Positions 7,643 through 55,820 of a DNA stretch of 64,000 bases are shown in pieces. The position numbers and the translations under genes were made by a program. The DNA is from Zygnema circumcarinatum SAG 698-1b (taxonomy: Eukaryota; Plantae; Zygnematophyceae). The DNA lies in assembly GCA_037447605.1 (NCBI GenBank), contig CM074814.1, positions 310,001 through 374,000 of the forward strand, in the 5' to 3' direction. Positions within the stretch are counted from its first letter, which is position 1. Every line of letters starts with the position of its first letter. The notes beneath the pieces were generated by a model. The model saw only the letters and a program-made list of their open reading frames with translations, was not told where the DNA came from and ran no database searches.

Positions 7643-15792
<8,150 letters not shown>

Positions 15793-17474: not shown

Positions 17475-21177
<3,703 letters not shown>

Positions 21178-29617: not shown

Positions 29618-31140
29618 ATGTGCGGTGCTGCATAAAGTAATCGCCGAGCAGCAACTTCAGCAGTGGGAGCACGGAGTACATAAGAGGGATTAACATATCT
29701 GGAAGGGTGGTTGGGAGGAGGGGGCTGAACTTCTGTACGTAGAGACTGACAGAGGTAATGTGCAGTAGCGAGAGGAGGTGAACCGTTGCTTCCGCACTTT
29801 GGAAGTGTCCACATGTTTTTTTTTGGAATGACATGAATGGAAAAATCTGTATTATAGCTGTAACCCTACGCAACACTGGAAATGTGGACGGATGAAGTGT
29901 TTCTTGATGTCTCCAGTTGAAATTTTTTCTCTATTGCCTCTTGCATAAAGGGATGAAGATAAAGAAGGTGAAAGAACAGGAAAATGGCAATACGAACGAC
30001 GCTTGGCAACCTGCCTCGCTCAAATACCCACCAAATTTCATTCCAGTTCCAAAGCAAGACAGTGATTTCTCGGTGATTTTTTCACAGAGAAATCGTAACC
30101 GTCGCCGGGCGAGTCTTGGCACAAAGAGCCAGCGAGCTCTCTTTGGCCTCCTTGCAAGTCTCTCCCTCCTACAAGGGCACTAAACGGGAGGAAGGACGAA
30201 GCAGTGAAGTTTCGGTTTTTGGCTGGACAAAGAGGCATTCGTACATGTCCTACATCTGCGTGGTTTGGGAATATTGTCATGGGTCAATGGTGGAATGTTT
30301 CCTTGGCACAATCTCGGATTTTCAGTTTCGTTTCGTCATGGTCTTTAGGCATTGAAGCCATAACGAGCCTTACTCTGAACTGGTCCTCGATGGAAAATGC
30401 TTTCTACTTATTTGCCCTCTAAAGATGTAGGGCTTGTGACGAGGGTGACGTTTCCACGTGCTTGCTTTTGCTGGATTCCTCAAAAAACCCGCTAGACCCT
30501 CCTCTCTTTCCCTCCCGGTCATTTCTTCCTTCCTTTTAGAGACAATCCACCAAAGATTAAGCAGCTTTCTGTGCTGAATTTCGCCCAAACAACCTCCAGT
30601 GCAGCCCCCCCCTCTCCGGCCGCCTGCTAACGGTGTCCAACGCGCTCCACGTGGCGTCCAGCGTGTCATCAAAGGCTAAATTGAAACGAATCACGACGTG
30701 CCAAGTGGCTCAAGAACTTGACATCGCAAAACCCAACAGCTTGTTCAGTGAGCACATTTGCAATACCCTCATTAAGTCTTTACATAACATGTCAACATTT
30801 CGCAAACACATAGCATCGTCTCAACAAGAAGGTCCAGCAGGTCCAGCAGACTTTCCATCGTGAACAAAATCTATGTCTGAAAAGCACAAGTAGCTCCGGA
30901 ATCTATTTCCCGAAATCCTTTTGCCCTCAATCTGTCCACCTCATAGCCTGACTGCTTGCTGTCCATATCCTGCTCCTACCTTTCTTCCTCTCCGCCGTGG
31001 AACAAACAAAGAGAAGGAACGCTGCAACTAAAGTCTCGTTCGCTACGAACATGTTTTACCACTCTTTAGACAATAAGGCTCAAAGTAAGGATGCCCTCTA
31101 AAGAACGATTTTCAGAGCATCAAGTAAAGGACTGCAGGGT

Positions 31141-32808
31141 TCAAGTGGCCTCACCATTCGGTTGAGCGAGTGCAGGATACACATGGGAAGGAATGACTGA
31201 TTTTCGAACACGAAAGCCTGGCGATACAGAGAACGCTACTTGCTGCACTCCTCCAATTTCAGACGAGTCGATAGACGACACCAATTTCATAAAAGCAGGG
31301 TCAAATGGAGCTCCCCTTGGAACTCTGAAGATGGAGGCAGGAGGGTCAAAGCTCTGTCCCAGCTTGTGCATTGACCACACCGCTTTGCACAGGGCCATAA
31401 GCTTGGAATTGCTTCTGCTTACATTGAAATAATCTTCAACCCATGCTGGATCATGCCGATTGGCTCCCAGATCTCTCAGAAAGCAGAAAAGGGCCCACAA
31501 TTTGTCATTCACGAAGCTGTTGAAGCGCTCCTCTTTCTCTTCAATCGTCCATCGCTCTTTTTCCTTCAGCTCCTTAAAATGGTGAAAAGCTTCACTGCTT
31601 CGCTTCGTTGGGTCAAGCCAAACAGAAACTCCTGAGGGAGAAAAGCATTCGTTCTCAAAATTGGCAAACATCATGGATGAAATTTGTGCCTCCAACGCGC
31701 ATTTTGCATGTGCGGGCCTGCAAAATTGAACTCCCCACTGAAGCCTTGAAAGAACATGCCACAATTCTTTCTGATTTGCCACCAGCCGAGTGAATTTTAC
31801 TCGAAGTTCAGCACAGTAGCATGTAAGAGCTCTCGAAACTTCATTATTTGCTTCCTGAAGATCATGAGGCTGTGCGAGAGAGCTATCATACGAACCACTC
31901 ATGGTATCCTTTGAGGAGATGTCACGTTCAAGCATGGATAGTTTTGAGAGGGCTTGGTCCTTCTCGGCTTTGAATCTCCCTACGTCCTCACGGGAGGTTT
32001 TCAACTCCAATCGGATATTCCCGAGTTCCACCTCAAGATGACCGACAGTTTTTTGGTACTTCCTCACCATTTCTTTCTCCTTTGAGAGATCTTTTTTGTA
32101 CTGACCTTCTATGGCTTCTCGTTCTTTCTTATACTTTTCCATGGATAATCGATCTCGCTCTTCTTGCTCCTTGGGGATATTTTGCAATTGAATCATTATC
32201 ACACCTATTTTTTCATTCAAGTCCGTCAGCTGCTTCTTCATACATGCGCGATCAGAGTTTTCAGTCTTTTTCTCGAATCTCACTGCCTGCTCCATCCTTT
32301 CAAATTTCGACAGCAGCCCCTTGATCTCTTGCATACCCGTCTCAAATAGCTGGCCCATTCCGTCCCACTTGTCTCGACTTGAACGAAGTTCTTCAATAGC
32401 TGTCATCAGAGTCTCCAGACTCTGAACCTGAAACTGCGTTTGCGAATCTGGACGACTCCTTTCCAACAGCTCGTTCTGAGATGGAAATCCATGATGAGCT
32501 TCCTGTTCTTCCTTTCCCTTGCCCTTTTTCCCGCCTCTTGTAGCATTGATTCCTGTTAACCATGGGATGAATCTCATGACGCCGCCTCCCCCATCTCGAT
32601 CAGATTGATTTGGATTGACACCATCCAAACTCGGCCGGTCCAAACTGATTTGAACATGGCTTTGAGCATCAGATGACGAGACAGGGGTTTTTTTTCGCAC
32701 TCCCACATCTTGTGAACACGTCGATAACGCGCCTTTATTTGAAAGACCTTCTTCCGAGTTATTCTGCACTCTGCCCGCCACGCTTGGCTTGCTGCTTGTT
32801 TCCCCCAT
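31141..32808 (-). CDS. Coiled-coil + GIL1/IRKI-type (GrpE-like) C-terminal protein, copy 2, 555 aa
   Basis: Intact ORF ending IFRVPRGAPFDPAFM...VAFSVSPGFRVRKSVIPSHVYP. Confidence 0.82.
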   Translation of the reverse strand: MGETSSKPSVAGRVQNNSEEGLSNKGALSTCSQDVGVRKKTPVSSSDAQSHVQISLDRPSLDGVNPNQSDRDGGGGVMRFIPWLTGINATRGGKKGKGKEEQEAHHGFPSQNELLERSRPDSQTQFQVQSLETLMTAIEELRSSRDKWDGMGQLFETGMQEIKGLLSKFERMEQAVRFEKKTENSDRACMKKQLTDLNEKIGVIMIQLQNIPKEQEERDRLSMEKYKKEREAIEGQYKKDLSKEKEMVRKYQKTVGHLEVELGNIRLELKTSREDVGRFKAEKDQALSKLSMLERDISSKDTMSGSYDSSLAQPHDLQEANNEVSRALTCYCAELRVKFTRLVANQKELWHVLSRLQWGVQFCRPAHAKCALEAQISSMMFANFENECFSPSGVSVWLDPTKRSSEAFHHFKELKEKERWTIEEKEERFNSFVNDKLWALFCFLRDLGANRHDPAWVEDYFNVSRSNSKLMALCKAVWSMHKLGQSFDPPASIFRVPRGAPFDPAFMKLVSSIDSSEIGGVQQVAFSVSPGFRVRKSVIPSHVYPALAQPNGEAT

Positions 32809-35954: not shown

Positions 35955-37852
35955 ATGGCGGCCATAGCCCAAAAGCTAATCCTTCCCATGTCACCATGGG
36001 CACCCTTCCGCCTATCTGGAGAACTCAGAGACGTAATCGTTCGCATCGGCAGCAAAGAGCTGCGCTTGCACCGCTTCCCCTTCTTCACGCGGAGCCCCAA
36101 ATTGAAGGAGAAGCTTCATCATCTTAAGGATGAGGCAGTGCTCGAGCTCGACGAGCTTCCCGGGGGGCTGCAGGCGTTCCATGCCATTGCAGACTACTGT
36201 TACGGAGTCTCGTCAGCCATTCCGAAGACCTCCGTGACTCACACTCTTTTGGGTGCATTGCATTTAGAGATGACCGACGATTTTTCTCCGGATAATTTGA
36301 TCAACGCTTGTGTTGGGTATTTGAAAGCGGAGGTTTATACGAATTGGAAAGCCTGCTTGGAGATTCTTAATGATGCGGTTGTGAGGAAATATGCGCACAC
36401 TCTTGGGAGCGACATCGTCTCCGCCTGCCAAACGACCATCTCAGGTGACTTTTTTATGAAACTCCAAAAGCAGGTCATATTATATTGTTATTGTTAAGTG
36501 ACAATGTACGAATTATGGATATTGTTAACGTTAACCGATTCCTTATACTGAAAGTAGAGCAGGCAATATAGACCTGCTCACTGATAGAACGGTACATTCT
36601 AATAAACTACTTTTTACTGCATGACGAACTAACTAGACTGATTAGCCTGACTGGTTAACTGCTTGACTTCTTGACTGGAACAGTTGGTGAGGGACTTGCA
36701 GTCTATGCAGAATCCATTGACCACCTTCCTGATCCTTTAGAACGAGTTTCGGAGACATGGAACTTCTTCAGACATGTCGCGGCATTGCCATTGGAACAAT
36801 TGAAGGCTCGTTTGACCGTTTTTGAGGAACACAATGTCACATTTATCGCAACAGGGAACTCCCTTGCTTCTGCAGGAAAGAAATGGATGTTTGAACCTTT
36901 GATACACGAGGATGATTCCACAATGGTTTCCGACGCAGGGTTGTCTCCGACCGAAGGAGCAATGAAGCTTCAAGTAATTCTCACATACCTTGTGAAAATG
37001 CTTGATTGGCCTCTAACTAACGTTAAATGTGAACCTTGTGAGTCAGCGCATGGAAGATCGGAGCAGATGAAACTTACCATTCCTCCCAGCCCTTCATATC
37101 TCGTCACATTGATGAGGCACAGCGAAGCCTTGGGCTCAAAATTGGCCTCTGATATTCAGCGCCGCATTGGAAAGGTTCTTCCTCAAGTCGGATTTGAGGA
37201 AGTGAAATCACTTCATCCAGAAAGCGTATGCACTATTTTCGCTCTCTATGCAAAGGAACTTCCAATCAATGGAACTGCTGCTTCTGGAAACTTAATAGCT
37301 GCTGGAAAGCTCGCGGATGCTTACATTCTTAAAGCTGCGGAGAACAAGACGTTGACTCTTGCGAATCTTCACGCTCTATGTGGAGTGCTGCCAAAGAATG
37401 CCCGAAAGAATTGCGACATTTTGTACAAAGCGATCGACATATTTTTGGTGAACAACACTGATGTGAGTGAAGATGATCGTGTGAAGCTCTGCGATCACCT
37501 CGCAGGAGAGAATCTTGAGAGTCTTAAGCTCTCGCAGGAGATGGTGAAGCATGCTCTGCTGGGAGGGAGGCTTCCTGCAAAACCGCGTTTTATCTCAGCC
37601 ATGTTGGCCTTCCATGAAAAGGCTCTCATGGCGGAGAAGAAGAAGGTAGAGGATCAGGCCAAGACGATCGAATCCCTGCATGGCTCAGTGAAGAGGATGC
37701 ATGAGGAATTGGAGATCACTCGGGCTTCGTTACAGATGGAGAAGAATACTACCAACTGTCTAATGGCGGAGGTGGAAAAACATTCTAAGAGGGTGAAGTT
37801 CAGCGTGTCAGCAGAGGAAGGGACGCCAAGGTCGGTTTTGCCGCAGCGTTAG
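35955..37852 (+). CDS. Divergent BTB-NPH3 (NRL-like) protein, type A, near-identical inverted duplicate; exons 35955-36444 and 36702-37852; about 546 aa
   Basis: Same exon lengths (490 and 1151 nt) as 21997-23894, with only scattered substitutions. Confidence 0.85.
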
Positions 37853-38278: not shown

Positions 38279-39420
38279 AGGGCGTTGGGGGCACACTGCA
38301 ACTGCTATGTGGACGGATATGGAAATGCGCACCACCATGCCCTTGTAGGGCCTTCTGAACCCCTTCTCATGAGGACTTTACAAAGAGACGACCATGAAAC
38401 AAACAAAAAAAAAAAAAAACAAAAACATGTTCAAAGGATTTTAGGGTTTGGCAAAACCTTGTGACAAAAGCTATCGGTTTTTGTATAGAAGGTGAAAGAG
38501 GGGCTAGTTTTGTTGTTGTTTTGTGTGGACTCATGGTCCCATGGAACAATGTTCAATGTGTTCGCCCCTCCGTTCGCACGTGTGCAGTACTCTCAGTTTG
38601 TAGGTTCCCATGTTGGTCAACATGTGCAAGTGGTGACTGGAATGGAACTGTGACTGAACACATAGAGCCCGTGACGTGACACTTCTCCAGAATGTCCAGA
38701 ATGTTCAATAATGTCCAAGGTGATTTTTTTTTTGAGTTTGAAATTTGAGCACGAAAGGCGCTAAGAAGGCAAAAGGGGAGACTGAAAGACAGGATGGGAA
38801 ATTAACCCCTTCTTTTTTTTCTTAAATTTTGCATTCAGAACTAGAGGAGTTTCTGCCGCCATGGCTGCTGCGAGCTGTGCACACACAGCCCCTCCCATGC
38901 ATCTCCACTTCTGCTTTCAACGGCGGTGAAGACCCAAAAGGCGATTGAAAGTAGAAGCTTAAAGCTCCTCTTTCGCTCTGTACATGTGCAGGTGCAGCTT
39001 TTTTTTAAACCCTAAAGACCTGCTGGCCATGGCAGAGGCTCGGGAAGGAGCTTTTCTTTGCTCTTCCGTGGCTGCAGAGGGAACGACAGCGAGTTAGGGA
39101 GAGAGAGAGAGAGGGAGAGGGAGGGGGAGGAGGGGGGCAAGGGGGAGAGGGAGAGAGAGGGGGACAGGGAGAAAGGAGGGAGGGATGGGGAGAGGACGAG
39201 GGAGAGGAAGCGGGAGAAGGGAGGGAGGGAGAGCGGGGGAGTAGGGGAAAGGAATGGGGAGGGAGAGTGCAGGCAGAGGGAGTGGCAGGGAAGTTGGACA
39301 TGGAGAGGGAGCGGGAGAGAGAGGAAGAGGGTGAGGAGAGGGAAAGGGGAGGTTTTGGAAGGGGAGAGGGGAAGCGGGAGTGGCGAGAGAGAGAGAGGAT
39401 GAGAGGGAGCCATGGCTCCC
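38279..39420 (+). repeat. Orphan third copy of the type-A BTB-NPH3 upstream/5'UTR region with no coding sequence after it
   Basis: Aligns directly with about 33745-34500 and inverted with about 24400-25180. The junction at 38279-38283 shares AGGGC microhomology with both donors. Confidence 0.75.
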
Positions 39421-40163
39421 ACTTTGTCTTGTTTAGTCAAATGACATTGTCAAGTTGATCCTCTAACAATCACGGTCTTTAAGCCCCCCCGATCTGCAGA
39501 GGAACGGCGTTTAGAGAATGGTAGAAACCCTTTATCCTTCCTTTTTCGTGTAAACAAAGCACAGACCTAAAAGAACTCGTATGAAAGTATTATCAATCGA
39601 ATAATTTGAACTCGAACCAACTTTGAAAAATCGCCGTGATAGCTTTGGAGGGCAAACTATTTCTATGCACAAAGCATTCATCGTGTGTTTAATTGATTTG
39701 ATCAAACTTAACGCTTGAAAAACCCAATTCGTTGTTCAGTGAGCACACTTGCAATAGCCTGATTAAGTCTATAAATAACACGTCAACATTTCGCAAACAC
39801 ATAGCATCGTCTCAACAAGAAGATCAAGGAGGTCCAAGGAGGTCAAGCAGACTTTCCATCATGAACAAAATCTATGTCTCAAAAATACAAGTAGCTCCGC
39901 AATCTATTTCCTCAAATCCTTCTGCCCTCGAATCTGTCCACCTCATAACCTGACTGCTTGCTGTCCATAGCCAACTCTTACCTTTCTTCCCCTCCACCGT
40001 GGGACAAACAAAGGGAAGCAACGCTGCAACTAAAGTCTCGTTCGCTACGAACATGCTCGACCACTCTTTAGACAATAAGGCTCAAAGTAAGGATGCCCTC
40101 TAAAGTACGATTTTCAGAGCATCAAGTAAAGGACTGCAAGGTTCAAGTGGCCTTACCATTCGG

Positions 40164-42559
40164 TTAAGCGAGTGCAGGATACACATGGGAAGGAATGACT
40201 GATTCTCGAACACGGAAGCCTGGCGTCACAGAGAACGCTACTTGCTGCACTGTTACAATTTCAGACGAGTCGATAGACGACACCAATTTCATTAAAGCAG
40301 GGTCAAATGCAGCTCCCCTTGCAACTCTGAAGATAGAGGCAGGTGGGTTGAAGCCCTGCGCCAGTTTGTGCATTGACCACACCGCTTTACAGAGGGCCAT
40401 AAGCTTGGAATTCCTTCTTCTTACATTGAAATAATCTTCAAGCGATTCTGAATCAGGATAAAGGGTTACTTTATCTTTCAGAAAGTAGAAAATGGCCCTA
40501 AATTTGTCATCCACGAAGCTATTGAAGCGCTCCTCTTTCTCTTCAATCGTCCACCGCTCTTTTTCCTTCAGCTCCTTAAAATGCTGAAAAGCGTCACGGC
40601 GTCGCTTCGTTGGGTCAAGCCAAACAGAAAATTCTAAGGGAGAAAAGCATTCGTTCTCAAAATTGGCAAACATTATGGATGCAATGTATGCCTCCAACGC
40701 GTCTTTTGCATGTGCGAGCCTGCAGAATTTCACTCCCCACTGAACCCTTTCAAAAGGAAAAACCCACAATCTTGTCCGATTTTTCGCAAGAACTTTTCTT
40801 TGTAGAAGTTCAGCACAGTAGCATGTAAGAGCTCTCGACACTTCAATATTCGCTTCCTGAAGATCATGAGGCTCTGCGAGGGAGCAATCGAAATAGCTCC
40901 TTCCCTGTCGCCACTTCTCCACCTCCATCCTCAAAGACTCGACCTCCTTCGCCTGCTCCTCTCTCTTCGTCTTCTCCAACATAAAGGCCTCCCTCTGAAA
41001 CCTAAACATCGCCATAAAGAACTTCCCCTCCGTCGGAAATCGCCCCTCCTCCAATGCATGCAATATCATCTTTTCAGAGAGCTTGAGAATCTCAGGATTT
41101 TCTCCCACGAGGTTGTCACAAATCCTCACACGATCTTCTTGGCTCACTTTAGGGTTCTTCTTCAAAAACATGTCAATAGCCTTATACAAATCATCGCAAC
41201 ATAGTCGTGCAAACTTGGGTAAAGTTTCACACATTATGTGAAGATCATCCAGAGTGAAGCTCTCAACCTCTTGTACGGCCCAAAGAATATAAGAATCTTG
41301 CAGCTTTGCAACTGCGATCAAGTCCTCGGAAGCTTCAGATTCATCAGCTTGAATCTCATTCGAATAGAGAGTGAAGAGAGTGCACACATCTCCCTGATCT
41401 AACGATTTCAGGTCCTCAAAATTGATTTTAGGAAGCTCGTTTGAGAGACGGCGGTACAGCTCTAATGTCAATTTCGAGTCCTGGACTTGCTGGCTGTACC
41501 TCAATAAAGTTACAAGGTATGAAGGATTAGGGTGAAGATTAGGTCCACAACCTTCCTTTGCCACACTTGTGGGCGTACTGAGCATCTTCACAAGGTAACC
41601 CAAAAGTGCTTGAAGCTGCTTTCTCCCCTCGGCCGGAGAAATTTGCAAGTCTGAGAACATTGTGAGATCAGGATCGTCTACCGCCGGTGCAAACATCCAT
41701 TCTTTTCCCGTGGACGAGAGAGAGTTTCCCGTTTTGATGAAAGTGACTTCATGTTCCTCAAACGTACTCAAAAGTGCCTCTAAAGCCTCAAACGGTAGCG
41801 CCACAACCTTGTTTAAGAGGTTCCATGTCTTCAAAACTCGCTCCATTGGATCGTCGAGCTTGTCGATGGATGCCGCATATTCTGCAATTCAGCCTCGCGA
41901 ACATTCGGGTGAGACACAAGTGAATAAGAAATGAGATTATCGGCATAAGTCTACGGATTATGATCGTTAAGGTCAATTAGTGCTTAGAGATGGAAGCATG
42001 AGAAAAGACAATTAGTGCAGGAGATGCATGATAGTAGGTCAAAATTTTAATCAAGACTGCCAAAAAAAAAACAAAACTCACCTGAAATCGTCTTATTGCA
42101 GGCGGAAACGATCTCCTTCCCGAGGGAGTGCTTGTATTCCCTCACCACAGAATCTCTGAGAAGCACAAGGCAGGCCTCCCAGCCACTGTACACTTCTGCC
42201 TGCAGAAATGCAGTACACACGCTCACCAAATTCATTGGGGGAGAATATTCGTCCGTCATCTCCAACTGCAGAGCAGCCAATAGAGTGTGAGCAGCTGTGG
42301 TCGCTGTGAAACTTGGGGTGATTCCGTAACAGTAATCGGCGACGGCATGGAACGCCTCCGAACCGCCCGGATGGTGCTCCAGCTGCAGCTCCGCCATGGC
42401 TACCGCATTCTGAAAATGAAGTTTTTCCTTCAATGTTTTGCTCTTTAAGAACAAGGGGAAGCGATGAAGCAGAAAGCATTGGCTTTCGACGAGAACGCGC
42501 ACGTCGTGAAGTTCTGCTGATTGGCGGAAATGGGTCCATGGCGATGCAGGAGAGGCCAT
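40164..42559 (-). CDS. In-frame fusion of BTB-NPH3 (type B) with the GIL1/IRKI-type (GrpE-like) C-terminal domain; exons 42559-42082 and 41881-40164; about 731 aa
   Basis: Exon 1 is the BTB domain. Exon 2 runs without a stop from the NPH3 block (KLQDSYI...LPKFAR..CDDLYKAIDMFL) through ...EVEKWRQG into RSYFDCSLAEPHDLQEAN...FDPALM...VTPGFRVRESVIPSHVYPALA. Confidence 0.85.
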
Positions 42560-44324
42560 GGATGGGCGAAGGGAACGAATTTACTTTGAAAGCTGCAAGC
42601 TGCAATGAGACAAAGTTATTAATAGGATTTTTTCTCTTTGACGTACTTGATTTTAAGTGTCTTAATATAATGCCTAATTTAGTACGCAAGCAGCCAAATG
42701 GAAGATAAAAGGTGGCGTAGGAGTCTGCCCCAGAGCCTACCAGAGCCTTTTAAATTAATCCTCAAACTAGAATTCCTTACAATATTAATATCTAGAAAAT
42801 GAGGCGGGAAGGATTATACAGCGGTCAAGGACAGTCGAATAAAAATAGGAAACGGAGAGGGAGAATGCTGCTGCGAATGCAAAAAAAAAGGCCACGGGCC
42901 AATTGGATTTATTCTTATTTCGGATCTTTTGGCTGCAACGCACACAGTGTTCCGGCAGAGGGAGCGAGATAGAGAGAGAGAGTGTGTGAGAGAGAGAGCG
43001 AGAGGGAAGGAGAGCGGCGGGGACACTCACGCAGATATTTAGGCAATGATGCTCCTTATTTCCACACCTCTGACCTCCTTCGCAAAAAAGTCCACTTCGG
43101 ACCTCTCTCCCCTCTTTCCTTCCTCTCTCACACTCCTCTCTCCCTCTGTCAAATTACACTTCAATTTTCTCAAAATCTCCAATAAACCGTTCCACCCTTC
43201 CTCCCGGTCCGTCCTTCCTTCTCGCGCCCTTGCAGGAGGGTAAGACTCGCAAGGCCAAAGAGAGCTCGCCGCCTCTTTGTGCCCAGGCTCTGCCGGCGAC
43301 CTCTCTCAGCGATAGTTTCCAAGGCATGCGATGGCCGTGATTGGCGGAGTCGATCCTGGGAGGAACTGGACGGCTGCGATTGCGCCTGCTGCGATCGGAC
43401 GGCTGCACGGCGCTTTCTGCGCCGTCGGCCCCCGAGGGAGGTGGAGGGTCCTGCGGTGTGTTGTGGCATGCAGGGCTGCTGACGTGGCGGCTTTTTGTTG
43501 CGGCTTGCTTCTAGGAACAACATTTAGGAGAGTGTCTACAACAACTTATTGGAGGGAATGAAGCGTTGTTGGGTCGAGGCGTAGCTCTCCGCTCCTAACG
43601 TTTTCTGTTGTGCTTGGATCCTTTGCGCCCAGTTCCTCGTGGTTCCCCATGATGCTGATGTTGTGAATGCACATTTGGTGGCATTATCGCCATCGTGAGA
43701 TCAATGCTACATCCTGTTGTTGTTGGTGTCGTTTCATGTCATGGCTTGTAAATTGCGTTTGTTGTTATCGGATGTGGATGAAACGATAGAATCGGAATCA
43801 AACTCACGATGGCGAGGGCATCAAATGGACATGGACAGAAAAACGACATGAACAACCAACTTTGCATTTCCATGCAAGCCATACTAATTCCTCGTGGTTT
43901 CCCATGATGATGTTGGCCATGCACATTTGATGGAGTCATCGCCATCGTGAGATCCATGCCCCATCCACTCCCTCTTGTTGCGCTCCATGTTGGGAAGTAA
44001 CTGCGGGGTGCGGGTCTATCGAGATTGGGCCTTCAGTTCCACTCACACGTGCGAAGCGACCGGCGGTCAATCAACGCGCGCGCCCCGCCTTTCGGTCCAT
44101 GCAGAAGCGTTCCAGGGCGAGGGAAGGAAGCCCTCGGACCGCCATGGCTGCACCTTCCAGCACTTTCCTCTGGAGGACCACCACCTCTTTTTAAGCAGCT
44201 AGCCGAATTTTTGGATTGCGTAAACGAAGCAATATTCTGATGAGACGTTGGCGGGAAATCATTGCAAGAAAAGTTTATTTCTTTCTTTAGTCCGTTTGGG
44301 TCATCAAGGACAGCAGCTATTCCC

Positions 44325-46112
44325 ATGGCAGCGACGAGCAGCAAGCAAAGCGTGGCGTGCAGAGGGCAGAATAACTCGAAAAAAGGTCTTTCATATAAAT
44401 GCGCGTTAACGAAGTGTCCACAAGATGCGCGAGTGCGAAAAAAAAATTGTGTCTCGTCATCTGATGCTCAAAGCCATGATGAGATCAGCACTGCGTTTTG
44501 TGAAATGCTGATGGGGAAGTCGTCCAATCTGATGATACTAGCTCAAGATTGGATGCAGGAATTTCAAACCGATCTGTATGAATTCTTTCCAAGTCGAGGA
44601 AGTTTTGACAGGCCGCGTTTGGATGGTGTTAATCCAAATCAATCTGATCAAGATGGGGGAGGTGGCGCCATGAGATTCTTGGCTTCTCTTCCTGGAGCGT
44701 TGATTCGAGGAATCAACGGTACAGGAGGCGGCATAAGGTGCAAGGGAAAGGACGAACAGGAAGCAGATCATGTATTTCCATTTCAGAATGAGCTGTTGGA
44801 AAGGAGTCGTCCTGACTCGCAAACGCAGTTTCAGGATCAGAGTCTGAAGGATACTCTGATTACAGCTATTGAAGAGTTTCGTTCAAGCCGAGACACGTGG
44901 GAGGAAAGGGGCCGGCTAGTTGAGACGGGTATGGAGGCGATCAAGGGGCTGCTGTCGAAATTTGAAAGGATGGAGCAGGCAGTGAGATTCGAGAAAGAGT
45001 CTGAGAACTCTGATCGCGCATGTTTGGAGAGGCAGCTGACGGACTTGAATGAAAAACTAGCGTTGATGAACGGGGAAAATATTCAATTGCAAAAGTTTGC
45101 CAAGGAGCAAGAAGAGCGAGATCGGTTATCGATAGAAAAGTATAAGAAAGAACGAGAAGATTTAGAAGGTCAGTACAAAAAGGTTCTCTCCAAAGAGCAA
45201 GAAATGGTGAGGACGTACGAAAAATCTGTCGGTCATCTTCAGGTGGAACTCGGGAATATCAGATTTGAGTTGAAAACCTCTCGAGAGGACGTAGTGAGAT
45301 TCAAAGCCGAGAAGGACCAAGCCCTCTCAAAACTATCCATGCTTGAACGTGACATTTCCTCTAAGGATACCAGTAGTGGTTCGTATGATAGCTCTCGCGC
45401 ACAGCCTCATGATCTTCAGGAAGCAAATAATGAAGTTTCGAGAGCTCTTACATGCTACTGTGCTGAACTTCGAGAAAAACTTACTCTGCTGGTGGCAAAT
45501 CAGAAAGAATTTTGGCAGCGTCTATCAACGCTTAAGCTGGGAGTGAAATTTTGCAGGCCTGCACATGCAAAATGCGCGTTGGAGGCACACATTGCATCCA
45601 TAATGTTCGCCAATTTTGAGAACGAATGCTTTTCTTCCTCAGGAGTTTCTGTTTGGCTTGACCCAACGAAGCGAAGCAGTGATGCTTTTCAGCATTTTAA
45701 GGAGCTGAAGGAAAAAGAGCGATGGATGATTGAAGAGAAAGTGGAGCACTTCAATAGCTTCGTGAATGACAGATTGTGGGCCATTTTCTGCTTCCTGAGT
45801 GGTCTGGGAGCCAATTGGCATGATCTAGCATGGGTTGAAGATTATTTCAATGTAAGAAGATGCAATTCCAAGCTTATGGCCTTGTTTAAAGCGCTGTGGT
45901 CAATGCACAAGCTGGCGCAGAGCTTCGACCCTCCCGCCTCCATCTTTAGAGTTCCAAAGGGAGTTGCATTTGACCCTGCTTTAATGCAATTGGTGTCGTC
46001 TATTGACTCGTCTGAAATTGGAGCAGTGCAGCAAGTAGCGTTCTGTGTATCTCCAGGCTTCCGTGTTCGAAATTCAGTCATTCCTTCCCATGTGTATCCT
46101 GCACTCGCTTAA
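44325..46112 (+). CDS. Coiled-coil + GIL1/IRKI-type (GrpE-like) C-terminal protein, copy 3, about 595 aa (inverted paralogue of copy 2)
   Basis: The ATG at 44325 is equivalent to the copy 2 start. Intact ORF with an extra N-terminal insert of about 40 aa. Confidence 0.82.
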   Translation: MAATSSKQSVACRGQNNSKKGLSYKCALTKCPQDARVRKKNCVSSSDAQSHDEISTAFCEMLMGKSSNLMILAQDWMQEFQTDLYEFFPSRGSFDRPRLDGVNPNQSDQDGGGGAMRFLASLPGALIRGINGTGGGIRCKGKDEQEADHVFPFQNELLERSRPDSQTQFQDQSLKDTLITAIEEFRSSRDTWEERGRLVETGMEAIKGLLSKFERMEQAVRFEKESENSDRACLERQLTDLNEKLALMNGENIQLQKFAKEQEERDRLSIEKYKKEREDLEGQYKKVLSKEQEMVRTYEKSVGHLQVELGNIRFELKTSREDVVRFKAEKDQALSKLSMLERDISSKDTSSGSYDSSRAQPHDLQEANNEVSRALTCYCAELREKLTLLVANQKEFWQRLSTLKLGVKFCRPAHAKCALEAHIASIMFANFENECFSSSGVSVWLDPTKRSSDAFQHFKELKEKERWMIEEKVEHFNSFVNDRLWAIFCFLSGLGANWHDLAWVEDYFNVRRCNSKLMALFKALWSMHKLAQSFDPPASIFRVPKGVAFDPALMQLVSSIDSSEIGAVQQVAFCVSPGFRVRNSVIPSHVYPALA

Positions 46113-47351
46113 CCGAATGGTGAGGCCACTTGAACCTTGCAGTCCTTTACTTGATGCTCTGAAAATCATACTTTAGAGGGCATCCTTACTTTGAGCCTTA
46201 CTGTCGAAAGAGTGGTCGAGCATGTTCGTAGCGAACGAGGCTTTAGTTGCAGCGTTGCTTGTCTTTGTTTTTCCCACGGCGGAGAGGAAGAAGGGTAGGA
46301 GCAGGCTATGCACATCAAGCAGTCAGGTTATGAGGTGGACAAATTGAGGGCAGAAGGGTTTCGGAAAATAGATTGCGGAGCTACTTGTGTTTTTGAGACA
46401 TAGATTTCGTTCACTATGGAAATTCTGTCTCCTGGACCTGTTGGATCTGCTTGTTGAGACGATGCTATGTGTTTGCGGAATGTTGACGGTTTTATGTAAA
46501 GACTAAATGAGGGAATTGCAAGTGTGCTCACTGAGCAAGATGTTAGGTTTTGCGATGTCAAGTTCTTGAGCCACTTGGCACGCCGTGATTCGTTTCAATC
46601 TAGCCGTTGGTGACACGCTGGACGCCACGTGGAGCGTCTTTGACGCCGTTGGCAGGCGGCCGGAGAGGGAGGGAAGGGGAGGGGAGGGGAGGGGGGGGGG
46701 GCTGCACTGGAGGTTGTTTGGGCGAAATTAGGCAAATGAAAGCTGCTTTATCTTTGGTGGGTTGTCTCTAAAAGGAAGGAAGAAAGGACCGGGAGGGAAA
46801 GAGAGGGAGGGTCTAGCGGGTTTTGCGAGGAATCAAGCACGGGTGAAACGTCACCCTCGTCACAAGGACAACATCTTTAGAGGGCAAATGAGTGGAAAAC
46901 ATTTTTCATCGAGGACCAATTCAGAGTTTGGCTCGTTATGGCTCCAATGCCTAAGAAACAATGATGACAAGAAACTGAAAATTCTAGATTGTGCCAAGGA
47001 AGCATTCCGCCCACTGACCCATGACCATATTCCCAAACCACGCAGATGTAAGACATGTACGAATGCCTCTTTGTCCAGCCACAGACCGAACTTCATTGCT
47101 TGTTCCAACACCTAAACTAAAGCAAAAGGATCGTCAATTTTCATTCACGTTCTGCCACCTAAGCACCATCTATTACTGCAGCAGCTATTTCCTAATTCCA
47201 TGGCTAGGACCCAACTTGGCACTGTACCTCCCTACCCTCCTTGGGACCGCAAAAATATGTACATCGTGAGATTGCTAAGGTCTCTCCCATCCATCACAAC
47301 ACCCTTTGTACAGATCTGCTTTTAGGACCTCCTTATCTCAGTGAAGCGTGG

Positions 47352-49486
47352 TTAAAACTCAAATTTCATCGTTTTCTGAAACTTGCATATTCCATTTTTC
47401 TTCGCTCTACCTATCACTTCGATCACGCTCCTTCCAAAGAACATTTCCACTTCGATTTCTCGGTTATCCAAAATATTGTAGTTCTTTGGTAGCTGCAGAA
47501 CGAATTTGCCCTCCTCTTGTACACCTTCATCAGTGACGTACTTCGGGGAACTTTCGGTTGTACTATACAAAACAATTTCTGAATGTCCTTGATTAGCAAG
47601 TTCTGGCACAAACAAAACATGCTTGAAACTTTCGTCTTCTTTTACTTTCTGATGAACTTCCACGAAACGTACGAAAATATCGTCGCACACAGGCAGAAAA
47701 AATGGCGGAAAAGGACGGGGTATGATGCTGAGCTTATCCTCCGGATCGGAGGGCTGAAATATCCTTGAAGCGCTAATTCCGTACGTCTTCTGGAGGCACC
47801 TTGAACCTGGTCGCAATTCAGGTCTAAGTGCATATAACGCGGCACCGACACAGACTGCACCGCCGGGATTGGGCGGCCGCAGGACTTTAAGCTCCTGAAA
47901 CAGTTCCTTCATGCGGTTAAAAAGATATTCTGACGAGGAAAAGCCGCCGACTGCAACAACGTGTTGCACTTTCGGGGCAGCTTCAAGCTGATGGGCAATA
48001 AGGTTCAAAATTTTCTCCACCACGGGATCGAAAAACCCTCTCACTTCATCAGGCGAAATTTTAATCTCATCGAAACTGCATGGAGGATTCTCGTTCTTAA
48101 AGTCGTAGTGGGTCCAATCATCGGCAAGTTCAGATGGTATTGAAATCAGACAGACTTCCCTTGAAGACGTGCTGTTGTATACATCAAAAACTGGAAGTCA
48201 GGAAATTTTTGATAGATCTCACTTATCATCATTTAGCTATGGCATCTTGACTATTGGCAGTGCCCCAAATCAATCGCCGACACAACTGAGTAGACTGTAA
48301 GAAAAGAGAAATAACCAACTAATTTCAATGTCAATTAAATTACAGCAGAAAAAGCGCCACTCGGATGCAAACGTTATCTCTCTTCTTAAAGGAAAGAACG
48401 TGCTTACTCGAAATTGCATTTATAATCCTCCCACTGTCGTAAAAGCGCAATCTCTGTAGTTGGATACGATTCAATAAACTTTGTCCAGCAGCCAATCTTT
48501 GACTTCACATGTTCCAAGAAATTGCTGTCAACATCAATACTCCCACACAACTCCCCAATGCTTCTTATCACCTCCCTCGTCCTCCCTCCCTCCTGCAACT
48601 CCTGCACAACGATATCAACTGTACCCCCCCCCGCATCAACCACTAGGAACTGGTCGCCCTCAGAAAGATGGAAATCTTTGTCTTCTTGGCAGTATATGGA
48701 GGCAGCTTCAGGCTCAAGTACAATATGGAGTGGAAAAGGACTTCCCCTTCCTGAGTTGCAGCCTTCCTCCTGAACAAGTCCAGCATCGTTTACGATTTTT
48801 CTCATTCTCTGCTTCGCTTTATCGTCCCACATTGCTGGAACTGTCACGGCCCACTCAATATCTGAATTTGTAATGTGTTTGCCATATTGTTGCTTCACGT
48901 CTTTGAGGACAAATTCTCCAAGAAACTTCAAGTAGTCTGATATCGCTTTATCTACCGAAAGCCCATCAGGAAGGTCCGGAATCTTCGACTTGTCGCTCTC
49001 CCGCGGTGCCAAATGCAGCTTGAAAAGCTTCACGAGGTATAACTTTCCAGCTGTAGAATTTTCCAATTTCTCACTTTCATACGGACTTTCTACAGAACCT
49101 TTCTTCTTCTTGACCCGCTCAACCGCCGCAAAATAGCGAAGAACTGCAGGCCACCCCCAGTCCCTTGCCACGTACTCTCCTGTCTCACTTTTTTCGTATA
49201 GAATCACCGTTGCCGTTTTACAATACGGCTTTTTCAGAAATTCACCTTGTCCTAGCCAATCTTCAAACATCCACCATTTTTCAGGCTGGCTTTTTGATAT
49301 ATAGGTGAACCCTGAGAAGGTCGTCCCGAAATCGAGACCAACAACAACGCGGGATTCGTTGAACGAGGAAACTTCTGCTGATGTCGAACCCCTTTCACTC
49401 TCTCCCCCTGCTCCTCTATTGCCTCCCGGTTTTCCTCCAACTTTGCCCTTACCCTTCCCCTTCCCTTTAAGTTTATATTTCCCCAT
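47352..49486 (-). CDS. Atypical Hsp70 (HSPA12-type), copy 2; exons 49486-48408 and 48171-47352; about 632 aa
   Basis: GLDFGTTFSGF, AVTVPAMW, LEPEAAS, VVDAGGGTVD and VGGFS motifs. Phase-2 intron in the same position as in copy 1; exon 2 starts align (GPNYNNECRIEIP vs DTSSREVCLISIP). Confidence 0.88.
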
Positions 49487-50031: not shown

Positions 50032-50339
50032 CGGGGAAAGCCATCTAGGACTACATGACCTCCTCTTTCATCGCTTTTTTATATTCTACGCTTTAAAGAA
50101 GGCTTTCCTTGTGAAGGGCTTTTCTTGGAAGGTTCTCCTCCTGCTCAGTGGGAAGCAAGTTTACGATTTTTTTTTTTTTGAAACAGCCTATCATCCTTCG
50201 CCTGCTTTCCTTTCTAAGGTTCTTGAATGGTTGGCCTATTCTTGGAAAGCTCCTGCACTACCTCGCTTGCAGGAACAGATCATTCCTCTTTCTCTTAGTC
50301 ATTTTTTTAGCAGAAAGCGAGAAAAGGATTATCGACGCC

Positions 50340-51770
50340 ATGGCAAAAACAATTTTCAGCAAAATTTTCCTTCCTTTTTCTCCTCCAAAGACAGAAAAAT
50401 CTTCCCAAAACAACGACCAGCCGCAGCAGAGTTCCACCAAAGCGCAGGATTTTTGTCACAGTGAGGGTTCACCTTCAACCGTGAATCCAACCGAGGGTTC
50501 ATCTGCAAATGAGCAGCAGAACCAAGCTCCCAGTTGCGAGGAATCCATGGACAGAAAATCGCCGGAGATTCAAGATTTAAAACAAAAGGGATGTGGAATG
50601 GGTGTAATATGTGGAAAGAGTTTGGTGGATGGTTTCCAAAGAAGAGGAAAAATCAAGGCAGGAAGTAAAAGAGAGAAAGAGATTGCTGCTGCAAATGACA
50701 GAATTCGGATAGAGAATGAAAACTTGACTTGCTCACAGCTACAGAAGCAGGTTGAGGAACAGGAGGAGATGCTGCTGAAACTCGGAAATCACATGAAGGA
50801 GAAAGAAACAAGAGTTCAGATTCTCCGTAAAGAGAAACGTGATCTCAAACGAGAGCAGGAAGAAGCGAGAAAGAAAATCAAGAGGATTTTGGAGTTGAAG
50901 GGAAGTGAAACAGAGGAAGACAAGGCAGACTTGTGTGCAGAAGTAGAAAAGTTAAAAAGTGAGAGAGACTTTGCCCTTTCAAAACTCACCGTACTTGAAA
51001 ACGATGTCGCTTCCAGGGACACTCTTAGTGGTTCTTATGACATCCTTCTCGCACATCCCGAAGACCTCCACGTGGCGATGGCAAAAATCGACACATTTCT
51101 GAAGTCTTTTAGTTTAGAGTTGCGAGAGAAGCTCATATTAAATTTCAAAGGAGATTTGTGGCAGCTCCTTGAAAGGCTTGCAAAGGGAGCAGAGTTTGTT
51201 CGTCCTGCACACGCCAATTATGCGCTGCATGCAGCAATTTCTGCAGTAATGTTTGCGAATTTTGAAAACGAATGTTTTCTTCCTGCGGGGCCGACATTAT
51301 ACGTTGATGCGAAGGAGCGCAGCAGTGAAAGTTTCAGGATCTTCACGGAGCTTAAGACAGAAGAAGGATGGAACGATGCAAAGACAAAGGTTCAATTTTT
51401 TGAGTTTCTTGAAAGCAAACGCAGTGGTTTGATTCAAGTATTGACGAGTGCAAACGGTTTAGGGCTTCAGGCTAGCCCAGAAGAAGTTGTGGGAGAATTC
51501 GGAGTTCAGAGAGAGAATCTCAAACTAGTGTCTCTTTGTAAGGCAGTATGGTCACTTCACAAGTTGGCGATGAGCTTCAATCCACCTGCTTCCATATTTA
51601 GGGTTTCTAGAGGAGTTGAATTTGATCCTGCACAGATGAGTTGGGTTCCTGTCATCGACTCATGCGAAAATGAAACTCTAAAGAGAGTGGCCTTCTGCGT
51701 CAATCCGGGATTTCGTGTCAGGAAATCGGTGATTCCAGCTTCAGTATATCCGGAGATTGCTAAGATTTGA
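50340..51770 (+). CDS. Coiled-coil + GIL1/IRKI-type (GrpE-like) C-terminal protein, copy 4, about 476 aa from the first in-frame ATG
   Basis: SGSYDILLAHPEDL, FANFENECF, VWSLHKLAMSFNPPASIFRVSRGVEFDPAQM...VAFCVNPGFRVRKSVIPASVYP. Confidence 0.8.
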   Translation: MAKTIFSKIFLPFSPPKTEKSSQNNDQPQQSSTKAQDFCHSEGSPSTVNPTEGSSANEQQNQAPSCEESMDRKSPEIQDLKQKGCGMGVICGKSLVDGFQRRGKIKAGSKREKEIAAANDRIRIENENLTCSQLQKQVEEQEEMLLKLGNHMKEKETRVQILRKEKRDLKREQEEARKKIKRILELKGSETEEDKADLCAEVEKLKSERDFALSKLTVLENDVASRDTLSGSYDILLAHPEDLHVAMAKIDTFLKSFSLELREKLILNFKGDLWQLLERLAKGAEFVRPAHANYALHAAISAVMFANFENECFLPAGPTLYVDAKERSSESFRIFTELKTEEGWNDAKTKVQFFEFLESKRSGLIQVLTSANGLGLQASPEEVVGEFGVQRENLKLVSLCKAVWSLHKLAMSFNPPASIFRVSRGVEFDPAQMSWVPVIDSCENETLKRVAFCVNPGFRVRKSVIPASVYPEIAKI

Positions 51771-53400: not shown

Positions 53401-54024
53401 GGAGCACCCTCTACCGCTAATAGAGCAGCCTAACTGCACTTCGGCTCATGGCTCCTCATTTGTGGTGTGCATTCATGCTTTTATTATTCACACAGCAAGA
53501 TCAATTATTATTCGGATCCGTTTAAAACTAATCCCCGTTCAGACGGTATAAAATCAGCAAAAAGTAAAGTTAGTAAAGTACCAGATTTGGATAACAGCAT
53601 TGTTCGCTAGACAACAAGTATCGCACGTGCGAGGACGAATCGGCCGCAGGCTAAAAGGTGGCACTTTTTATCTAGTGTCATTCTAGTGAGGGAGGGAGGG
53701 GTGAGAGATAGAGGTAGGAGGGTAGGGAGGGAGGTCAGAGGTGTGGAGTTAAGAGCTTCATCGCTTATATATCTGCGTGAGTGTCACCAGCCCTCTCCCT
53801 CCCTCTCGCTCTCTCTCTCCCACACTCTTTCTCTCTCTCTCTATCTCGCTCCCTCTGACGGAATACTGTGTGAGTTGCAGTCAAAAGTTTCGAAATAAGA
53901 ATAAATCGAACAGGCACATAAAGACACGTAAAATCAAGTACTTAAAATAGAAAAATTCCTGCTAATAAATTTCTCTCATTGCTTCTTGCAGCTTTCCAAG
54001 TAAATTCGTTCCCTTCGCGCATCC

Positions 54025-55565
54025 ATGGCCACTCCTGCATCGCCATGGACCTCTTTCCGCCAATCGGCAGAACTTCACGACGTGCGCGTTCTCGTCGACA
54101 GCCAATGCTTTTTGCTTCATCGCTTCCCTTTGTTCTCACGGAGCAAAAAATTGAAGGAAGACCTTTATTTTCAGAAGGCGGCAGCCATGGCGGAGCTGCA
54201 GCTGGAGCACCTTCCAGGCGGTGCGGATGCGTTCCACACCGTTGCTGATTACTGTTACGGAATCCCCCCAAGTTTCACGGCGACCTCGGCTGCTCACACT
54301 CTAATGGCTGCTCTGCAGTTGGAGATGACGGACGAATATTCTCCTCCAAAGAATTTGGTGGATGTTTGTACTGCATTTCTGCAGGCGGAAGTATATAATG
54401 ACTGGCAGGCCTGCCTGCTGGTGCTCAGGGATTCTGTGGTGAGGGAATACAAGCACTCCCTTGGGAAGGAGATCGTTTCCGCTTGCAATAAGACGATTTC
54501 AGGTGAGTTTTGCTTTTTTCTGGCAGTCTTGATTAAAATTTTAACCTACTATCATGCATTTCCTGTGCTAAATTTTCGTTTCTCATGCTTCCATCTCTAA
54601 GCACTAATTGACCTTAAAGATCACATGCCGTAGACATATGCTGATATTCTCTTTTCTTATTTACTTGTGAATCACCCGAATGTTTGCGAGGCTGAATTGC
54701 AGAATATGCGGCATCCATCGACAAGCTCGACGATCCAACGGAGCGAGTTTCGAAGTCATGGAACCTCTTAAACAAGGTTGTGGCGCTACCGTTGGAGGCT
54801 CTTGAGGAACTTTTGAGTGCGTTTGAGGAACATGAAGTCACGTTCATTGGAGCAGGAAACTCCCTCTCGTCTACGGGAAAGGAATGGATGTTTGTACCGG
54901 CGGTAGACGATCCAGATCTCACAATGTTTTCAGACTTGCAAATTTCTCCGGCCGAGGGGAGAAAGCAGCTTCAAGCACTTTTGGGTTACCTTGTGAAGAT
55001 GCTCAGTACGCCCACAAGTGTGGCAAAGGAAGGTTGTGGACCCACTCTTCATCCTAATCCTTCATACCTTGTAACTTTATTGAGGCACAGCCAACTCAAG
55101 GACTCGAAATTGACATTAGAGTTGTACCGCCGTGTCTCAAAGGTGCTTCCTATAACCAATTTTGAGGACCTGAAATCGTTAGATCAGGAAACTGTCTGCA
55201 CTCTCTTCACTCTCTATTCGAATGAGATTCAAGCTGATGAAGCAGAAGCTTCCGAGGACTTGATCGCAGCTGCAAAGCTTGCTGATTCTTACCTTCTTTG
55301 GGCCGTACAAGAGGTTGAGAGCTTCACTCTGGATGATCTTCACATAATGTGTGAAACTCTACCCAAGTTTGCACGATTACGTTGCGATGATTTATATAAG
55401 GCTATTGACACGTTTTTGACGAAGAACTCTAAAGTGAGCCAAGAGGATCGTGTGAGGCTTTGTGATAATCTCGTGGGAGACAATCCGAAGATTCTCAAGC
55501 TCTCTGAAGAGATGATATTGCATGCATTGGAGGAGGGAAGAGTTCCGACCGAGGGGAAGTTGTAG
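54025..55565 (+). pseudogene. BTB-NPH3 type B (inverted paralogue of the fusion gene's N-terminal half), truncated by an LTR insertion; exons 54025-54502 and 54703-55565
   Basis: Co-linear with 42559-41030 up to PTEGK. The sequence switches to TGTAG... at 55561 and a stop follows at once. Confidence 0.8.
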
Positions 55566-55810
55566 CGAAACGCTACAGTCACCCACGGGAGGTGTACTTA
55601 GGGCGCACTCCGTCCTAGTACTCTCACCCCGGGCGCGGGCCGAGTGGCCAAGGCGTCGGGGACCACCCAGGACCAGGAAGGGTCCTGGGATCGAACCTTG
55701 CGAAGGTTGCAAGGGTTCGATGCGGCGCGGTATACAGAGACATATATGTACCGCGTCGCCGATGTGGTCGAGGGATCATGGAATCCCGACCACATCGTCC
55801 TTACGTTTTG
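55561..55810 (+). mobile_element. End of an LTR-type insertion (TGTAG terminus), hairpin-rich, with tRNA-like A/B boxes; cut by an N gap
   Basis: Abrupt loss of homology with the paralogue at TG. Same TGTAG terminus as the solo LTR at 34599-35451. The other end is not visible. Confidence 0.55.
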
Positions 55811-55820
55811 NNNNNNNNNN

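Follow-up and report, generated by a model that had tools for sequence, protein, structure and literature searches.

A fusion of BTB-NPH3 and GIL1/IRKI-type domains, probably young, in a tandem gene cluster of Zygnema circumcarinatum

A gene on the minus strand of a 64,000-nucleotide stretch of the Zygnema circumcarinatum SAG 698-1b genome (GenBank assembly GCA_037447605.1, contig CM074814.1, positions 310,001 to 374,000; hereafter the window, in whose own numbering all positions are given) joins the front of a BTB-NPH3 protein, a member of the NRL (NPH3/RPT2-like) type, to the C-terminal half, or head, of a GIL1/IRKI-type protein. An earlier note on the window had proposed a single spliced open reading frame (ORF) of about 731 residues of this kind, and the frame was recovered here with 731 codons, three Pfam domains and a splice that is present in RNA. 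With a probability of about 0.6, we regard the locus as a young, transcribed chimeric gene specifying what is probably an NRL-type scaffold, the C-terminal tail of which has been exchanged for a GIL1/IRKI head. Three observations carry the comparison of the two families in the manner of a Rosetta-stone argument: unfused type-A NPH3 genes and four unfused GIL1-like genes (copies 1 to 4) occur in the same window, RNA contigs span the junction, and a similar fusion (P0154) has arisen, apparently independently, in another organism.

Architecture and transcription of the fused gene

The spliced frame is 2196 nt long, has no internal stops and consists of exon 1 (42559-42082), a 200-nt GT..AG intron and exon 2 (41881-40164). 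The order of parts in the 731-residue product is BTB, NPH3, a helix of 41 residues, a short disordered linker and a GIL1/IRKI head of 241 residues. The features of the locus, in the direction of transcription, are as follows (ORF residues are those of the 560-residue ORF of exon 2; AF2 stands for AlphaFold2 and pLDDT for its predicted local distance difference test score).

42560-42714, minus strand: 5' untranslated region (UTR) of at least 155 nt, from record 27 of the X7 RNA contigs, which covers 42082-42714 with 0 mismatches
42082-42559, minus strand: exon 1, 478 nt, with BTB/POZ at 42529-42251 (Pfam); exon 1 of the type-B paralog is equally long
41882-42081, minus strand: intron, 200 nt, from the X7 splice joint 41881/42082 (CT..AC)
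41109-41807, minus strand: NPH3 domain (ORF residues 14-246), from Pfam, 88% protein identity to the type-B paralog and AF2 pLDDT mostly >90
40905-41027, minus strand: long C-terminal helix of the NPH3 family, presumed coiled coil (ORF residues 274-314), an AF2 helix whose counterpart in type-A NPH3, by alignment, is the coiled-coil region
40890-40904, minus strand: junction linker (ORF residues 315-319, GRSYF), from the identity drop upstream of 40889 and low AF2 pLDDT
40167-40889, minus strand: GIL1/IRKI head, 241 codons, with GIL1_IRKI_C at 40334-40179, from 74% protein identity to copy 2, Pfam, AF2 and Foldseek
39719-40166, minus strand: stop codon and 445 nt of 3' flank that moved with the head, from identity to the copy 2 and copy 3 flanks and fusion-specific RNA contigs

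All three Pfam domains score above their cut-offs. The BTB domain (PF00651) matches residues 11-103 of the ORF at 42047-42559 with 8.4e-6 and 26.4 bits (cut-off 20.5). The 560-residue ORF (40164-41846, minus strand) carries both of the others with no intervening stop: NPH3 (PF03000) at residues 14-246, with 3.5e-18 and 66.6 bits (cut-off 27) over profile positions 7-248 of 258, and GIL1_IRKI_C (PF24994) at residues 505-556, with 1.9e-9 and 37.8 bits (cut-off 27). The splice sites can be read directly, the donor being TCAG/GTGAGT (exon end 42082) and the acceptor TTGCAG/AA (exon start 41881). The intron is in phase 1, lies at the position found in the other BTB-NPH3 genes of the window, and diverges from that of the type-B paralog by 0.108 (Jukes-Cantor distance).

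Transcripts across the junction, which the earlier note had named as a check, were found in RNA contigs from three studies, all with 0 mismatches: X6 at 40360-41252, X7 at 40522-41210 and X12 at 40511-40942. An X7 contig omits exactly 41882-42081, the predicted intron, over which read depth is 0 in three RNA-type runs as against 131 in the DNA run X2. Within the junction stretch 40600-41200, 77-100% of the sampled words are present in six of the nine runs of RNA kind listed. The 3' part of the gene is also covered by fusion-specific RNA contigs (X6 39811-40295, X7 39480-39837). Other X7 and X12 contigs, which differ by 11-14 mismatches, were considered as its 3' end and rejected, since every mismatch has the copy 2 letter and they are thus transcripts of copy 2.

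The locus is bordered on both sides by long, low-complexity tracts rich in GA/CT (39000-39440 and 42785-43046), and such tracts recur beside the cluster genes at many other sites, 8300-8730 and 19650-20040 among them.

Origin of the two halves within the gene cluster

The fused gene lies in a cluster that includes, within the window, four GIL1/IRKI-like and four BTB-NPH3 genes (the fusion among them), two atypical Hsp70-like genes and Copia fragments. The genes that enter the comparisons are:

25952-27787, minus strand: GIL1-like copy 1
31141-32808, minus strand (with 3' flank 30728-32808): GIL1-like copy 2, 555 residues, a donor-type relative of the head, transcribed (X7 and X12 contigs with copy 2 letters)
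44262-46112, plus strand (with 3' flank 44262-46551): GIL1-like copy 3, 616 residues, head-to-head with the fusion gene
50148-51770, plus strand: GIL1-like copy 4
about 21997-23864, minus strand, and 35955-37852, plus strand: two nearly identical type-A BTB-NPH3 genes
54025-55565, plus strand (homology from 53918): type-B BTB-NPH3 paralog, to which the front half is most closely related

The front half is a close relative of the type-B paralog, with 90.8% DNA identity over 1648 nt between 42666-41020 and 53918-55561, and 85% identity in the upstream flank (42903-43081). The back half, from 40889 to 39719, is 87.4% identical to copy 2 and 86.0% to copy 3. Upstream of 40889 the identity to these copies falls from about 90% to about 27%, which places the junction at 40904-40890, in good agreement with the position near 40900 given in the earlier note; the other edge of homology is 39719. 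For the 131 nt at 41019-40890 the rest of the window offers no DNA match; by protein alignment with type A they correspond to the coiled-coil segment of the NPH3 family, the similarity to type-A NPH3 extending at the protein level to residue 485 of the fusion. The matching spot in the unfused GIL1-like proteins is a Ser/Gly-rich linker (SGSY/D) that follows their own coiled coil. Between the extreme C-terminus of type-A NPH3 (37700-37852; VKFSVS, PRSVLP) and the end of the GIL1 head (40179-40240; VAFSVT, RESVIP) there is a weak resemblance, with a BLAST E of 4.6 that is not significant, and this could be either a shared short motif or chance.

The earlier note had also matched the 3' flank to that of copy 2 and had seen in this a sign of local recombination, a view that was borne out. 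In the flank at 40163-39719, 397 of 434 aligned bases are identical to copy 2 (31164-30728) and 391 of 438 to copy 3. Copies 2 and 3 resemble each other more (about 93-95% identity) than either resembles the fusion, and their mutual homology continues beyond both ends of the tract common with the fusion, so that the fusion holds a bounded piece of 1.17 kb, comprising 241 codons and 445 nt of noncoding flank. Because noncoding 3' flank was transferred together with the head in one bounded piece, the event took place at the DNA level within the cluster and is not an artefact of read-through or splicing.

The distances are similar throughout. The synonymous divergence (dS) is 0.18 between the front half and the type-B paralog, and 0.14 and 0.17 between the head and copies 2 and 3, respectively; in the 3' flank, Jukes-Cantor divergence is 0.09 between fusion and copy 2, 0.12 between fusion and copy 3, and 0.10 between copies 2 and 3. 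These values fit a single burst of duplication and rearrangement. Gene conversion from copy 1 or 4 was considered as the source of two divergent patches in the head (see below) and dismissed, as neither copy resembles them.

What the head replaced can be approached from the DNA run X2. One of its contigs tracks the NPH3 side to 40889 and then diverges, and the next 30 nt would encode nine codons and a stop; this 30-nt consensus is absent from the window. Judged from that one consensus, the loose end probably belongs to an unfused type-B copy, or else to the 3' end that the truncated paralog has lost, and this would mean that only a short native tail was replaced. Another X2 contig joins 40969 back to 39862, a unit of 1108 nt, and the X2 joints near the junction point to a structural variant or further copies. 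The type-B paralog itself (53918-56719 examined) is cut off at 55562, in the end of the NPH3 domain, by a Copia reverse transcriptase fragment (RVT_2, 1.8e-38), with a stop exactly where the homology ends and a run of N downstream at about 55820. No pair of long terminal repeats was found around the fragment downstream of the paralog, where the N gap also lies.

The two atypical Hsp70-like ORFs of the cluster (4244-5233, plus strand, and 48404-49486, minus strand) match Pfam HSP70 with 1.5e-8 and 2.5e-6, at profile positions 112-238 only. The second stands head-to-head with GIL1-like copy 4, and a BcrAD_BadFG-like ORF at 47352-48044 (minus strand) is probably its next exon.

Constraint, recurrence and competing explanations

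Ratios of nonsynonymous to synonymous divergence (dN/dS, or omega) were estimated by the Nei-Gojobori method with bootstrap. For the front (NPH3) half against the type-B paralog, dS is 0.177, dN 0.066 and dN/dS 0.38, comparable values between types A and B over the long term being 0.30-0.34; when polarised by type A, the amino-acid changes divide 16:11 between the two branches. These figures argue that the NPH3 half is under constraint. The head is different: in pairwise comparison its dN/dS reaches 1.05 with copy 2 and 0.94 with copy 3, the value for copies 2 and 3 themselves being 0.67. The comparison with the parent genes suggested in the earlier note thus gave a constrained value for the front half only. 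Most of the changes in the head are gathered in two patches, where the family as a whole also varies most, and omega outside them is 0.55, a biased figure in that the patches were chosen after inspection. Independently of this split, changes occur at only 8 of the 85 sites at which the four GIL1-like copies are invariant, against 40 of 153 elsewhere (Fisher p = 0.002).

That the frame has stayed open despite clustered substitutions and compensating indels had been taken in the earlier note as a sign of selection. The supposed compensating frameshift pair turned out to be two separate in-frame 3-nt indels amid dense substitutions, and the ratio of about 1 in the head does not by itself show selection there; the survival of the frame against the odds and the placement of changes suggest it. 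Under random placement of the observed number of substitutions the chance of remaining stop-free is 4.3% for the head and 12.6% for the front half, and the three coding indels are each of 3 nt, while those of the flank are of 1, 6 and 10 nt. The pattern looks like constraint on fold and frame combined with fast change in surface regions, although neutrality of the head is not formally rejected.

A second fusion came from an exhaustive HMMER search with the 560-residue ORF over 1.84 billion protein representatives, the best 150 matches of which were re-scored with each half separately. Among these 150, P0004 alone matches both halves (NPH3 5e-18, head 5e-20). Its cluster includes P0154, a protein of 744 residues, and derives from four transcript assemblies of a different organism (Logan SRR8128902, -03, -06 and -07). 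P0154 is encoded identically on transcript contigs of about 2.5 kb in three of the runs, and the fourth contig, that of P0004 itself, keeps a 381-nt phase-1 intron at a position homologous to that of the fusion intron. P0154 consists of NPH3 and head, without BTB, and an upstream in-frame stop shows its N-terminus to be complete. Also present in these runs are GIL1-like proteins without fusion (P0061, P0047) and P0005, an NPH3 protein that is likewise unfused. Word-index protein searches, one with the fusion ORF and one with P0154, brought up no more than P0154's own cluster and three distant grass NRLs. A further protein of a Logan transcript assembly, P0008 (730 residues), has an NPH3 domain followed by a WD40 propeller, and NPH3 seems apt to exchange its C-terminal domains in these algae.

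P0154 is only 25-33% identical to the fusion of the window, and the halves of the two proteins group separately. In the tree of heads, the five window sequences form one clade (98) and P0004 belongs to another (99) with P0061 and P0047 of its own runs. In the NPH3 tree, type A, type B and the fusion form one clade (100/99), in which the fusion joins type B first, and P0154 lies outside; to constrain fusion, type B and P0154 together costs 107 log-likelihood (lnL) units (approximately unbiased (AU) test, p = 5e-5), the constrained group having been named after the tree was seen. P0154 retains about 58 residues of the GIL1-type coiled coil before its linker, where the window fusion retains none, and its head is 30% identical to that of the nearest unfused paralog. 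With part of the coiled coil kept and so low an identity, the P0154 fusion is old and has a different breakpoint. Two independent fusions are favoured as the simplest reading. The search for BTB-NPH3 and GIL1/IRKI head fusions elsewhere that the earlier note had recommended has in this way yielded one case, an NPH3 and head protein in a second organism.

Several observations weigh against the interpretation of the locus as a functional chimeric gene. No single RNA contig runs from the BTB exon to the stop codon, and the RNA coverage of the fusion is patchy, with a low depth of about 2-9. In the spliced X7 contig, the 633 nt of exon 1 and 5' UTR are matched exactly, but the first 105 nt of exon 2 show six differences; the three of these that are listed all have the letters of the type-B paralog, and the contig is either chimeric between mRNAs of two paralogs or derived from a third copy. 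On the fusion branch, the dN/dS of the head is 1.14 (bootstrap 0.64-2.3), indistinguishable from neutral, and eight residues that are invariant across the four GIL1-like copies are altered. The native C-terminal RxS/14-3-3 regulatory region of NRLs is gone. Lastly, each GIL1-like gene has a BTB-NPH3 neighbour, and the earlier note had combined this with the fusion in support of a functional link; two of the pairs are head-to-head (copy 2 with type A, and the fusion with copy 3) and two are in tandem, and the repeated adjacency reflects one duplicated cluster, so it is not independent evidence. What strengthens the proposed link is the independent second fusion.

Much of this would be expected if the gene were real and transcribed but functionless, an accident of cluster rearrangement now drifting to decay. 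Besides the head ratio of about 1 and the low RNA depth, such a view can draw on the number of changes at otherwise invariant sites, eight in the fusion head where copy 2 has 1 and copy 3 has 5, and on the fate of the sister type-B paralog, the destruction of which by a Copia fragment indicates that the cluster does shed copies. It must also explain a joint chance of only about 0.005 that both halves have stayed stop-free, coding indels that are all in frame, substitutions that avoid conserved sites, the constraint on the NPH3 half, and the long retention of a similar fusion in another organism, with a head so far from its nearest unfused paralog. A neutral by-product is a serious contender but, we think, an unlikely one, and the second fusion in particular sets this gene above an ordinary accident of the cluster.

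That both organisms have the same N-to-C domain order and the same upstream phase-1 intron position could also suggest one ancient fusion, older than their split, with the head in Zygnema later overwritten by gene conversion from copy 2/3; concerted evolution is, after all, common in tandem clusters. This is improbable given the position of P0154 outside the NPH3 clade and the cost of moving it, the lack of BTB in P0154 and its different breakpoint, and a homology tract that begins exactly at the edge of the head and takes in 445 nt of noncoding flank. In so repetitive a cluster, where the X2 contigs have a loose end at 40889 and a joint that goes back 1108 nt, one might suspect that the assembly had wrongly joined a BTB-NPH3 gene to a GIL1-like gene. 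Such a mis-join is scarcely credible, however, when 40890-40904 is crossed without a mismatch by independent RNA contigs, 432-893 nt long and from three studies, and the words of the junction are so widely present in the RNA-kind runs; the loose end more plausibly represents a further, unfused copy.

Under the preferred interpretation, a young chimeric gene, a DNA-level rearrangement within the cluster, non-homologous or mediated by microhomology, would have deleted or inserted sequence such that a type-B BTB-NPH3 gene received, in place of its own short tail, the 1.17-kb piece, that is, the last 241 codons and the 3' flank of a gene of copy 2/3 type. A breakpoint in the flexible linker that separates long helix and globular head in both parent families would have preserved a sensible build. 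The product may be an NRL-type scaffold, its regulatory tail swapped for a GIL1/IRKI head, and could hard-wire a partnership normally formed by separate NRL and GIL1-like proteins through their helices.

It could be speculated further that NRL and GIL1/IRKI proteins are physical partners in streptophytes by way of their long helices, that the head serves as the output or client-binding module of the NRL scaffold, and that two algal lineages have independently welded the pair; this remains tentative and rather doubtful. In land plants, NRL-type scaffolds are CUL3 adaptors at the plasma membrane and act in phototropin signalling, and the CUL3 role is one that the scaffold may possibly share. If carried over to land plants, such a partnership would tie phototropin/NPH3 signalling to GIL1, a gravitropism factor that depends on phytochrome. 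To our knowledge, no mechanism has been established for GIL1 or IRKI, and little is understood of the NPH3 domain itself. Among the few clues obtainable from sequence that two families act together is a domain fusion that has arisen twice, and here it hints that two poorly understood families of plant tropism proteins do so. The locus also provides a dated and well-delimited case of the birth of a multi-domain gene in a tandem cluster, with its breakpoint in a linker, co-transferred flank, immediate transcription and unequal constraint on the two halves.

Predicted fold and comparison with known systems

The AF2 model of the head (91 homologues; pLDDT 88, predicted template modelling score 0.88) consists of a helical bundle and, after it, a small beta domain, and that of the 560-residue exon 2 product (pLDDT 88) has a helical NPH3 domain, the helix at 274-314, the linker and the head. 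The pLDDT falls below 50 at residues 316-318, exactly at the junction, which for this reason can be assigned to an inter-domain linker. By Foldseek, the head matches Arabidopsis GIL1 (F4KGE8 residues 301-558) with E 1.9e-11 and a template modelling score (TM) of 0.80, and IRKI (Q9LXU9) with TM 0.71. The next-best fold is that of MIEAP/SPATA18, an animal mitochondria-eating protein (E about 1e-4, TM 0.33-0.38), which ranks above GrpE. A search of the ESM Atlas gave GIL1/DUF641 clusters at low scores, with MIEAP clusters also listed.

The earlier note had assigned the C-terminal half to a GrpE-like family, an assignment that gave way to GIL1/IRKI by both Pfam and fold. The resemblance to GrpE nucleotide-exchange factors lies in the build, a long helix then a helical bundle and small beta domain, and all of its scores are below significance. 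The four best solved-structure matches to the head in VIA-align are all GrpE, with Z 5.6-5.9 over about 100 residues, below the tool's caution line of 8; Foldseek matches to GrpE are repeated but have E 0.04-0.24, TM 0.2-0.3 (<0.31) and probability 0.25-0.84. The beta domain of copy 3 has a Pfam GrpE (PF01025) match of 14.8 bits, under the cut-off of 25.8. The Pfam scan of the fusion gave no GrpE match, and no GrpE was found when a family profile was compared with the PDB. The likeness is a weak, fold-level lead from predicted structure, not a finding. A bolder extension would be that the head is a diverged GrpE-type domain engaging the atypical Hsp70-like ATPases of the same cluster.

In the literature searched, no paper pairing NPH3 and DUF641 was found, NPH3 and GIL1 occurred together only in an unrelated rice transcript study, and the combination of BTB-NPH3 with a GIL1 head was not found described.

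When compared with NPH3, RPT2 and NCH1, the NRLs of land plants, the fusion has the N-terminal BTB, the NPH3 domain and the long helix that follows, and is about 31% identical to land-plant NRLs over a quarter of the protein. The predicted 41-residue helix (274-314) is apparently homologous to the coiled-coil region of type A. At 40890-40904, the C-terminal region of land-plant NPH3 gives way to the GIL1/IRKI head. Arabidopsis NPH3 serves phototropin signalling as a scaffold at the plasma membrane, and its C-terminus, with an RxS/14-3-3 site phosphorylated by phot1 and a lipid-binding motif, is where it is controlled (PMC8531357, PMC8531446). The end of the fusion head, RVRESVIPSHVYPALA, contains an RxS, a motif that is not conserved across the GIL1 family.

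When compared with GIL1 and IRKI (the DUF641 family), the C-terminal half of the fusion has the GIL1_IRKI_C domain and the same fold, and BTB-NPH3 stands in place of the N-terminal coiled-coil half, which in land plants is DUF641. The DUF641 profile (PF04859) had no match even at E 5 in the unfused copies 1-4. GIL1 is necessary for phytochrome-mediated agravitropism in hypocotyls, by a mode of action described as poorly understood (Allen et al. 2006, as reported in PMC10196131). The nearest counterpart of the fusion is P0154/P0004, which has the same domain order and a homologous phase-1 intron but differs in having no BTB and in keeping part of the coiled coil, and in each of the two organisms both halves of the fused protein nest with that organism's own unfused genes.

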